From positions 14,322,001 to 14,386,000 of the forward strand of contig OU015568.1 in NCBI GenBank assembly GCA_907165135.1: DNA of 64,000 nt. Direction: 5' to 3'. The position numbers were made by a program, and so were the translations under genes. This stretch comes from Oikopleura dioica (Eukaryota > Animalia > Chordata). Positions 29,663 to 32,447 of this stretch are shown here, piece after piece (within the stretch, counting starts at the first letter, position 1; every line of letters begins with the position of its first letter). The notes below the pieces were generated by a model. It was not told the DNA's origin, did not search any database, and was given only the letters and a program-made list of their open reading frames with translations.

Positions 29663-31425
29663 ATGGAGAACGGAAGATTCAAGAGTAAATTTGGCTACGA
29701 ACTAGAAACTTACAAATGGAAGCCCGAAGGAACGCCAAAAGTATGTTTATTGAGAATTTACGTGTTTAAAAATATTCAGTTCGTTTTCTACCTCTGTCAT
29801 GGCTATGGCGAATGGGCTGGAAACCACGGTTATACGCGGGAATTTCTGCCTAAGCTTCTTGAACTTGGCGCCGTTGTCTTCAGTCATGATCACTATGCTC
29901 ACGGAAAATCTGGTCCTTTTGAAAGAACCCACCGCGATCGATGTCAAATTAAGGATATACCCGATAAAATTGAACTTTCATAGCGCCTAAATACGAGGTC
30001 GGATCATTTTTATTTCAAAAGCAATCCTACTTAAAATTGTGCTTTAAATTAAATTCTGGTACTTTTTTAGAAATTTTCATAAGAATTTTCCTCTCTCGAG
30101 CGATTTGAAAACGAACTCTCTCGATTTCTCGAAATTTTTCCACTAAATCGCTAAAACTGAACCGTATTCTGTATTGCAATGATGCTAAGCTACAAAATTG
30201 ATGGGATCAAATTCTTAAACTCGATCGAATTTTTCATTCTAGTGTTCTCTTCTTTTCTACCCTTGTTTTCTTCTCTACGCGTTTTTTCGCGTGCTACCAA
30301 TCAGAGCGGTGCGCTCAACCACGCACTTTCTCTCGGAAAAGAGGACTCGAGTGAGCGAGCTCCCAGCGCGCCGCTTTGTAGAGCTTTCACGCGCTGAGTA
30401 GCCCTCAATGAAATGGCTCTAGAATCGGTTTCCTTCGGAATTAACGAAAAGTAAACCATCAAAATTGTAGATAAAGGTCTAAAGAACTTATCTATCGAAA
30501 AATCTCGACCGATTTAGTCCAAAAATTTCGAGTAATCGAGAGAGTAAGATTTGAAATCGCTCTAAAGAGAAAAATTCAAATGAGAAAATATAAATAAGTA
30601 CCAAATATGAGTTCTACGTGCATTTTAACGTAGAATTGCTTTTGAAATATAAATGATCCTACGTCGCATTTCGACGCTATGAAAGTTCAATTTTATCGGG
30701 TATATCCTTAAGAGTTTCGATGAAACTGCGAGCGATCTCTGCGCTAGAATCAAAATCGCAAGAGAAGAATACCCAGCCCTTCCATGTCTTCTGCTCGGTT
30801 GTTCTATGGGCGGCTTGATAAGTTTTGTAGCAGTGATGAACGAAAAACCAGATATTGATGGGCTCATGCTTTTAGCTCCAGCAATCCAGGTAAAATCTAA
30901 AAAAAAATTTTGCTTACGATTCAACGTAGATTGACAAAAAATCAGCACCAGCTTGGCTTCGAGCTCTTGGTCGAGTTATTGGTTTCATTTACCCGAGCAT
31001 GAAGAGCCCTCTTCCATTGGATCTCGATTTGATTACCAGAAATAAGGTTAGACTTTTTTTTGTGCATAAATGCCAATGTTTACAAGGAACACGCTGAGTG
31101 GATAAAAAAAGATATCGAAGAATACGGAGACAATGGAGGCTACGACTGCGGATTCGCTCTTCGAATGCTCAAAGCCCAAGAAAAGATTCAAGCTTGGATT
31201 GAAGCGAGAAATTTCCCAAAAGAACTTCCAGTTGTTCTTTTTACCGGAACGAAGGACGAAATTTGCACACCTGAAGGGTGTTACTTCGCTGAGAAGAACA
31301 TCGAAGGTTCGAAATTATATACCTACGAAGGTGCAGCTCATGCACTTACAAACGAACTCCCGGAAACGGCTGAAAAGTTTTATGAAGACTTGTCTTCCTG
31401 GATTACTTCTGTGATTTCTAAATAA
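29663..31425 (+). CDS. MGLL: Monoglyceride lipase-like alpha/beta hydrolase; exon 2 interrupted by a MITE or MITE-derived intron
   Basis: HGYGEW, DH..HGKS, nucleophile GCSMGG, catalytic Asp (GTKDEI) and His (AAHAL). The frame is restored exactly by removing 29954-30712. Confidence 0.88.
29953..30707. mobile_element. Kolobok-like MITE inside MGLL coding sequence; candidate GA-AG intron 29954-30712
   Basis: TTAA TSD at 29949-29952 and 30708-30711; TIR GGATATACCCGATAAAATTGAACTTTCATAGCG (33 bp identical, about 250 bp imperfect). Confidence 0.92.
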
Positions 31426-31536
31426 AGTCTTATTGGCAATGCACTGTGAGAAATTAGCTGATCTTCTTCTGTCCCATAATTCTAGAATAACAAACGGGTT
31501 GATGCCTTACGATTATTTAAATAAACAGTTGTAAAA

Positions 31537-32447
31537 ATGTCGTACGGATCAAATGTTCCAAGTTATTGTTTTCCAGCTCAATCAACTCCATATCCTCAAG
31601 CGTCCCAATTTCCTCTAACGAACCAAGCTCCATATCCACCATCACCTCGTCAATCGCAAACTTCGCCTCTGCCATCTCCAGTCGCAGTTACTGTAGATCA
31701 GCAGATTATCCCGGGTCCCGTTAATAATACGCCCAAGAGACGGTGTTCCCAACAGATGATCTATCGAAAAGTTATAGTGAACTGATATAACAAATTCATA
31801 TTGAACACTGTTTGAAGGCGGTAATAAATAAATTATTTATTATAGAGAAGAAAAAGAAAATAATAGATTGAAAGGATTGATCGTCTTTATCGTGATTATC
31901 CTTGTCCTTTACATAGCACTGGATCCAAAGTCAATGATGGCAACTGACAAAGCTTGGTGTGGCACGACAACGGAAGAAAATCAAGCCCCGCTTGACGAAT
32001 TGGTACTTCTTCCAGGAGGTAACGATGTTACTTTCTTTGGCGGCAGATATTATGCTGAGTTCAACCCCCAAGTGTCGAACGAGCTTGAATGTTCAATTGA
32101 TGTGATGTTTCGTACTCATGGTCAAATTACAGGAATAGATCAAGCTGTTTTTACTATACCTTCGATAAATCCAAACAAAAACATAATTTGATCGTGTAAA
32201 AAGTCAAGGGAAGTGTAGACTTTGCAGGATACGATTGCGAGGAAGTTTATGCGAAAATTCAAGGTTCAATTTATCTTTTATCGATCTTTATTATCCCATT
32301 AAACTTTCAGGACAAAAAATTTGCGGGCAACAAGAAATAAACCGCGGGTTTTACGACCAGAATATCGAGATTGTCTTCGTTGGTAATGTCTCTGATAACG
32401 ATGCTTCGACTATTGGAATTTTCGACCTCATTATCAGCAACCCATAA
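31537..32447 (+). CDS. Type II membrane protein with a Pro/Gln-rich cytoplasmic N-terminus, function unknown
   Basis: P/Q-rich ORF 31537-31785, TM segment (GLIVFIVIILVLYIAL) and Cys-containing ectodomain exons up to the stop at 32447. Confidence 0.55.

Follow-up and report, generated by a model that had tools for sequence, protein, structure and literature searches.

The stretch of Oikopleura dioica DNA analyzed here, which we call the window, is 64 kb long and contains a gene predicted to encode an MGLL-like serine hydrolase. The database entry of the corresponding public protein assigns it to OKI2018_I69, chromosome PAR. The gene is divided into five exons, two of which are the halves of a single ancestral exon separated by a transposable element (Table 1). 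When positions 29954-30712 are removed, the gene reads into a stop-free product of 294 amino acids with the junction ...RDRCQIK/SFDETASDL.... This product matches the Pfam family Hydrolase_4 (PF12146) with an E-value of 7e-39 and human MGLL structures with an E-value of 2e-26, in an alignment that is continuous across the junction. Its GCSMGG, GTKDEIC, and GAAHAL segments align with the catalytic Ser, Asp, and His motifs of MGLL, and the gene carries the GxSxG nucleophile, Asp, and His that characterize α/β-hydrolases. Judged from these matches, the host gene encodes an MGLL-like serine hydrolase and is intact apart from the insertion. A previous reading of the same DNA, made from the sequence alone, had stated that removal of the element is in frame and collinear with MGLL and keeps the Ser-Asp-His triad, and the 294-residue product agrees with it in each respect.

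Retention of the element would truncate the protein. The first in-frame stop codon is the TAG at 29981-29983 of the forward strand, nine codons into the element, and the resulting product of 93 amino acids ends in ...CQIKDIPDKIELS and contains none of the catalytic Ser, Asp, and His. The coding sequence of the host gene holds only one TTAA, which is the insertion target.

Table 1. Positions of the MGLL-like gene, the inserted element, and the candidate intron within the window.
Feature	Positions	Strand	Basis and remarks
MGLL-like gene, exon 1	29663..29740	+	gene model
Exon 2, upstream half of ancestral exon	29780..29953	+	gene model
Left TTAA TSD	29949..29952	+	with G29953 makes exonic ...TTAAG; single TTAAG in the empty-allele X2 contig
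Non-autonomous DNA transposon (MITE), 755 bp	29953..30707	.	sequence, ORFs, word depth in DNA runs
Left perfect TIR, 33 nt	29953..29985	+	inverted-repeat search
Left long imperfect arm	29953..30150	+	82% complementary to 30510-30707; RNA fold
Candidate GA-AG intron, 759 nt	29954..30712	+	element minus its first G, plus TTAA and a host G; annotated in g12522.t1; absent from the empty DNA allele
Right long imperfect arm	30510..30707	+	complementarity, RNA fold
Right perfect TIR, 33 nt	30675..30707	-	inverted-repeat search
Right TTAA TSD	30708..30711	+	sequence; flanks of other copies in DNA contigs
Exon 3, downstream half of ancestral exon, with GCSMG	30713..30889	+	gene model, MGLL alignment
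Exon 4	30930..31046	+	gene model
Exon 5, catalytic Asp and His, stop codon	31087..31425	+	present model; public model leaves the exon at 31306

The present gene model differs from the public one at its 3' end. Over 31306-31916, the public model g12522.t1 (392 amino acids) exits the lipase gene at ...AEKNIE and splices into the next gene (ALDPKSMM...), and it continues to 32444, so that the last 39 lipase codons, including the catalytic His (GAAHAL), are dropped. The stand-alone reading of 294 residues stops at 31425, and its alignment with human MGLL extends to the end of the reading. Therefore, g12522.t1 looks like a chimera of two neighboring genes, possibly belonging to an operon. Intron 1 of the host gene (29741-29779) is 39 nt long, in frame, and free of stop codons, which is why ORF callers join exon 1, intron 1, and exon 2 into one frame (29663..29983).

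Anatomy and family of the inserted element

The element, delimited by reading the sequence between 29700 and 30960, is framed by two direct copies of TTAA in the context ...TGTCAAATTAAG/GATATACCCG...CGGGTATATCC TTAAG/AGTTTC.... The terminal 33 nt on its two sides form a perfect inverted repeat (two matches, with none expected from 100 shuffles), and the first mismatch in the pairing of the ends occurs at position 34. The inverted repeats are the outermost parts of arms that are each about 200 nt long. The GC content of the element is 37%, its longest open reading frame encodes at most 72 amino acids, and its termini are 5'-GG...CC-3' (5'-GGATAT...ATATCC-3'). The central part, at 30290-30400, is GC-richer than the AT-rich arms and contains a CCAATCAG motif and the short palindromes CGCGTTTTTTCGCG and GTGCGCTCAACCACGCAC. 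The coordinates of the element, the 33-bp perfect TIR, and the TTAA TSDs given by the sequence-only reading were recovered by reading the sequence and by the inverted-repeat search. The predicted RNA fold of the element region is a hairpin of about 200 bp, with an energy of -293.8 kcal/mol and a z-score of -18, the basal 37 bp of which are perfectly paired. A structured RNA gene within the element was rejected, as a search of the element against Rfam returned no match.

MITEs of the piggyBac type have a TTAA TSD and CCC...GGG-type termini. The TSD of the present element agrees with this assignment, but its GG...CC termini do not, and a piggyBac-type MITE was rejected. Kolobok elements are told apart from piggyBac by a TTAA TSD in combination with 5'-RR...YY-3' termini (PMC9587614), and the element displays both characters. 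It fits a Kolobok-type (TTAA-targeting) non-autonomous MITE, as the sequence-only reading had suggested, with the superfamily assigned from end signatures only, since no transposase is linked to the element. The element shares with Kolobok MITEs the TTAA TSD, the RR...YY (GG...CC) termini, the TIRs, the multicopy state, and the lack of coding capacity; it differs from them in the arms of about 200 nt, which make it nearly a foldback element.

The element belongs to a mobile multicopy family. In Logan contigs of two DNA sequencing runs (X2 and X5), the summed word depth on the element is 17-100 times that of the flanks, and contigs at least 99% alike over the element number 133 of 355 in X2 and 236 of 725 in X5. 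At loose contig ends in both runs, other copies of the element pass into unrelated sequence directly after TTAA. Within the 64-kb window, no second copy was found. Two scans of JGI metagenome contigs for the TIR gave no match in the first and two chance matches, lacking TTAA and further similarity, in the second. At positions 30277 and 30607 of the element, the base present in the window occurs in none of the X2 and X5 contigs, all of which have G and T, respectively. These mismatches could represent private substitutions, errors in polishing of a repeat, or an exact copy that is absent from X2.

Empty and filled alleles

The insertion is segregating in the population, and only some chromosomes carry the filled site. 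A contig of DNA run X2 connects 29948 directly to 30708, with exactly 759 nt missing; the position of the joint can be shifted by up to five places because of the TTAAG ambiguity. The depth of this contig is 5.7, compared with about 10-12 in the flanks. The coverage of X2 is even over exons, introns, and intergenic DNA, and the run therefore represents genomic DNA and not cDNA. In run X5, a contig continues directly after 29953 with AGTTTCGATGAAACTGC, the sequence of the empty site, and unitigs stop exactly at 29953, as expected of a branch point. The X5 sample is more diverged from the window, with differences of 5-9% in the exon. The empty allele CAAATTAAGAGTTTC, which the sequence-only reading had predicted and proposed as a check for presence/absence polymorphism, thus exists as DNA, and an empty site is seen in both runs. 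Over about 1 kb, the X2 flank contigs listed agree with the window at every position. The filled and empty alleles therefore seem to lie on a single haplotype background, which points to a young insertion.

We considered whether the filled site could be an artefact, with a repeat misplaced in the Nanopore assembly. The two positions at which the letter of the window is found in no X2 or X5 contig, and the lack of a contig bridging exon and element among those listed, are in line with such an error, yet a hole in the contigs proves nothing. The perfect duplication of TTAA, the intact ends of the element, and an empty form with exactly one TTAA speak against misassembly. So do the X5 unitigs that end exactly at 29953, and DNA run X1 contains 81% of the sampled words. 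A misplaced repeat is therefore very unlikely.

The polymorphism could also reflect a loss, if this haplotype had first carried the element and the empty allele had arisen later by precise excision of a TTAA element, in the germline or in the soma. Footprint-free excision is a property of some TTAA-specific transposases (piggyBac) and is not known for Kolobok. The empty and filled alleles appear to have identical flanks in X2, the empty site is a clean single TTAAG, and the many contigs that are at least 99% alike make the family look recently active, all of which is in line with such an excision. However, the site is also empty in the more diverged X5 sample and in three relatives described below, and the empty state is thus ancestral. 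Excision would have to be assumed in addition, an autonomous element was not observed, and we consider this course of events quite improbable.

The homologous site lies inside one exon in all three relatives compared: the Bergen homolog (L001), the OKI paralog (L002), and a Tara Oceans contig (L003). The Tara Oceans sequence (996 bp) encodes a relative with 77% identity and keeps the TTAA (CAGATTAAAAAC). Since the three relatives are uninterrupted at this position, there was no older intron there, and the location of the element in an exon, as described in the sequence-only reading, is correct. The insertion of the element into a pre-existing intron, which would mean that no new intron was formed, has a negligible probability. 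The segment that can be removed consists exactly of the element and one TSD and includes no further intronic sequence. In the DNA of the empty allele the exon runs on without a break, the reading frames of the Bergen, OKI-paralog, and Tara relatives pass through the site, and the alignment with human MGLL is continuous there. An older intron was rejected on the basis of the empty allele and the three continuous relatives.

Intron positions vary elsewhere in the gene family. Wild relatives of about 64-77% identity (L003, P0007, P0008) and the Okinawan paralog P0002 show read-through of an intron just before SHDHYAHG, and the gene in the window has no intron at this point. Copies or lineages of the family thus differ in their intron positions.

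The annotated intron and its splice signals

The public model Oidioi.mRNA.OKI2018_I69.PAR.g12522.t1 reads ...CQIKSFDET..., and its second intron maps exactly to 29954-30712 with GA..AG ends. The annotation of OKI2018_I69 was produced by AUGUSTUS with RNA hints (PMC11067885; PMC8008620), and GAAG, GCAG, GGAG, and similar splice pairs were permitted only where hinted (PMC11067885). Therefore, some RNA read or Trinity transcript almost certainly skipped the 759 nt. The hints were derived from RNA of embryos and adults that had been pooled from the laboratory culture, and the reference was built from one male with a heterozygosity of about 3.6%, with its haplotypes merged (PMC8008620). Transcripts of the empty allele aligned to the filled reference would give the same apparent intron. 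The joint can be placed in six equivalent registers (TT..CC, TA..CT, AA..TT, AG..TA, GG..AA, and GA..AG), of which GA..AG alone counts as a permitted splice pair and would therefore be chosen automatically. The GA-AG register proposed by the sequence-only reading is the only one with an AG acceptor, and it is the one used by the public annotation. Pooled transcripts of the empty allele, if they were the source of the hints, would be sufficient to explain the annotated intron, for which the polymorphism accounts as well as splicing does.

As the joined form occurs in DNA, splicing is proven neither by the annotated intron nor by junction reads from pooled RNA, and a cDNA with ATTAAG^AGTTTC, which the sequence-only reading had named as a check, need not stem from a spliced transcript. 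A preference of HaploMerger2 for the longer allele would make insertions overrepresented in the reference. We found no support for such a bias in the literature covered and did not use it as evidence.

The splice sites of the candidate intron are AAG/GATATA...CCTTAAG/. The exon ends in AG, the intron has G at position +1 and A at +4, and the acceptor is AAG, so the candidate has the exonic AG and the GA...AG ends of the GA-AG class. GA-AG introns are more frequent than GC-AG introns in O. dioica and form its commonest non-canonical class (PMC7072748). Its GA donors are preceded by a conserved exonic AG and followed by a highly conserved A (PMC7072748), and in a copepod with the same GA logo, nearly all GA donors have A at +3 (PMC5714493). 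The candidate donor has T at +3 in place of the conserved A and is probably weak. The exonic AG, the GA, and the A at +4 named in the sequence-only reading are thus present, and the donor departs from the class at position +3. An annotated GA-AG intron of 71 nt in the downstream gene (32133-32203) has the donor CAG/GAATAG, with A at +3, and the acceptor AAAAG/. Acceptors with AAG occur in neighboring annotated introns (31084-31086 and 32201-32203), which had likewise been noticed in the sequence-only reading.

The length and folding of the candidate intron are also unusual. About 11% of OKI introns are non-canonical (non-GT-AG), and the median intron length is 49 nt (PMC8008620); at 759 nt, the candidate is about 15 times longer. 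Both its donor and its acceptor are located within the perfect 37-bp duplex at the base of the stem of about 200 bp. According to the predicted fold, the terminal stem could bring the splice sites together, and it could also hide the donor. Many alternative in-frame G[N]..AG pairs are available, but only the pair at 29954/30712 has an exonic AG. The GG-AG register (29953/30714) was rejected, as it would delete one codon and lacks an exonic AG.

That the candidate intron is in frame and collinear with MGLL, which the sequence-only reading had brought forward in favor of splicing, carries no weight, because removal of an element together with one TSD restores the sequence after every insertion. 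The one non-trivial coincidence of the case is the G that follows TTAA, which is found at 67 of the 544 TTAA sites in the window (about 12%); this is unremarkable, since the case had been flagged for its spliceability.

In two oligo-dT RNA runs from 2026 (X12 and X13), no reads matched even the multicopy element, and the animals were probably of another lineage or did not express the gene. The older RNA runs listed contain almost none of the words of the host gene. Comparison of the 294-residue product and an 89-residue junction piece with Logan/ENA protein fragments gave no near-identical match, and retrieved only the NCBI model and diverged relatives.

Fate of the filled allele and routes of intron gain

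Our preferred reading, which we hold with moderate confidence, is that the filled allele is mainly gene-breaking and is carried at intermediate frequency as a recent, segregating insertion of a Kolobok-type element. In this reading, a non-autonomous transposon of this type inserted recently into the single TTAA that the coding sequence contains, on the haplotype later represented by the OKI2018_I69 reference; the ancestral uninterrupted allele is still found as DNA in the population. The filled allele would mainly cause a loss of function, because translation would end nine codons into the element, ahead of the catalytic Ser. We hypothesize that it is tolerated in heterozygotes and buffered by a paralog, and that splicing at AAG/GATATA...TTAAG/ rescues at most a minor share of its transcripts.

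It is also possible, albeit less probable, that the filled allele is spliced efficiently at AAG/GA...AAG/, in the manner of an introner. In that event the insertion would be close to neutral, and its polymorphism would mark an intron that is still being gained. The exact GA-AG register with its exonic AG and A at +4, the lack of a competing in-frame donor with an exonic AG, the AAG acceptors of neighboring introns, and the absence of lesions from the rest of the host gene are consistent with a newborn intron. The spliceosome of O. dioica is unusually permissive, with GA-AG as the commonest non-canonical class (PMC7072748). The stem of the TIRs could juxtapose the splice sites, as proposed for MITE-derived introns elsewhere, and g12522.t1 contains the intron 29954-30712. 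However, the joined form present as DNA makes both the annotation and pooled RNA uninformative on this point. At +3 the donor has T and not the A that is conserved among GA donors, both splice sites are enclosed in the perfect 37-bp helix, and the length is about 15 times the median. Restoration of the frame is automatic, and the TTAAG is a coincidence of about 12%.

There are precedents for introns of this origin. Introns derived from MITEs have been documented in the larvacean Fritillaria borealis, and some known introners draw their splice sites from TSDs (Henriet et al. 2019, as summarized in PMC11282704; PMC9860276). According to that summary, in Fritillaria, as in the present case, MITE TIRs and a TSD lie at the exon-intron borders, the intron position is species-specific, and a non-GT donor is proposed. 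The Fritillaria introns described there have mostly AG-AC or AG-AT sites, number in the thousands, are spliced as shown by RNA, and are associated with a modified spliceosome, whereas the present case is a single GA-AG candidate that is known from DNA and is still polymorphic as an insertion.

Introners of Micromonas, Aureococcus, dinoflagellates, and others (Huff 2016, Gozashti 2022/2025) are DNA transposons of which one end, with a TSD and an adjoining exon base, provides the splice sites and leaves the mRNA unchanged, as would be the case for the present element if spliced. The element shares with them a multicopy family of near-identical copies and a position without an intron in relatives, in the empty allele of X2 and X5, and in the MGLL alignment. 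GA donors make up 0-40% in some introner families (PMC9860276). What defines an introner family is the large number of its genic copies that are spliced; here one copy was seen in a gene, as a candidate intron. In the introner literature covered, O. dioica is not named, and a TTAA/Kolobok route to GA-AG introns in O. dioica was not found in the literature covered.

Ordinary GA-AG introns of O. dioica share with the candidate the exonic AG, the GA..AG ends, and the tolerance of AAG acceptors. The candidate differs from them by T at +3, a length of 759 nt compared with a median of 49, and a strongly folding transposon. By analogy, the present case corresponds conceptually to the known introner or MITE-to-intron route, as far as it is described in PMC11282704 and PMC9860276. 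New here are the empty site present as DNA, the explicability of the GA-AG intron of the public model by polymorphism, and the lack of an older intron at the position.

The sequence-only reading had gone further and proposed a route of intron gain open to insertions at any sense-strand TTAAG. A wider generalization, tentative and in our view rather unlikely, is that the relaxed GN-AG donors of O. dioica would allow every Kolobok-type MITE at such a site to be spliced immediately, whatever its orientation; the MGLL-like allele would be a still polymorphic intron gain in a chordate that can be cultured, and some of the many non-canonical introns of the species would have arisen in this way.

The meaning of the locus depends on the fate of the filled transcripts. 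If they are not spliced, the locus is a warning for annotation, as models built on one haplotype with hints from pooled RNA can turn heterozygous insertions into apparent non-canonical introns, and such artefacts would push up the numbers of non-canonical and "new" introns counted in O. dioica. Should the filled allele be spliced, a rare birth of an animal intron would be seen as a segregating polymorphism in a chordate that can be cultured in the laboratory, and the excess of GA-AG introns in O. dioica would be linked to transposon insertions, as has been shown for Fritillaria.
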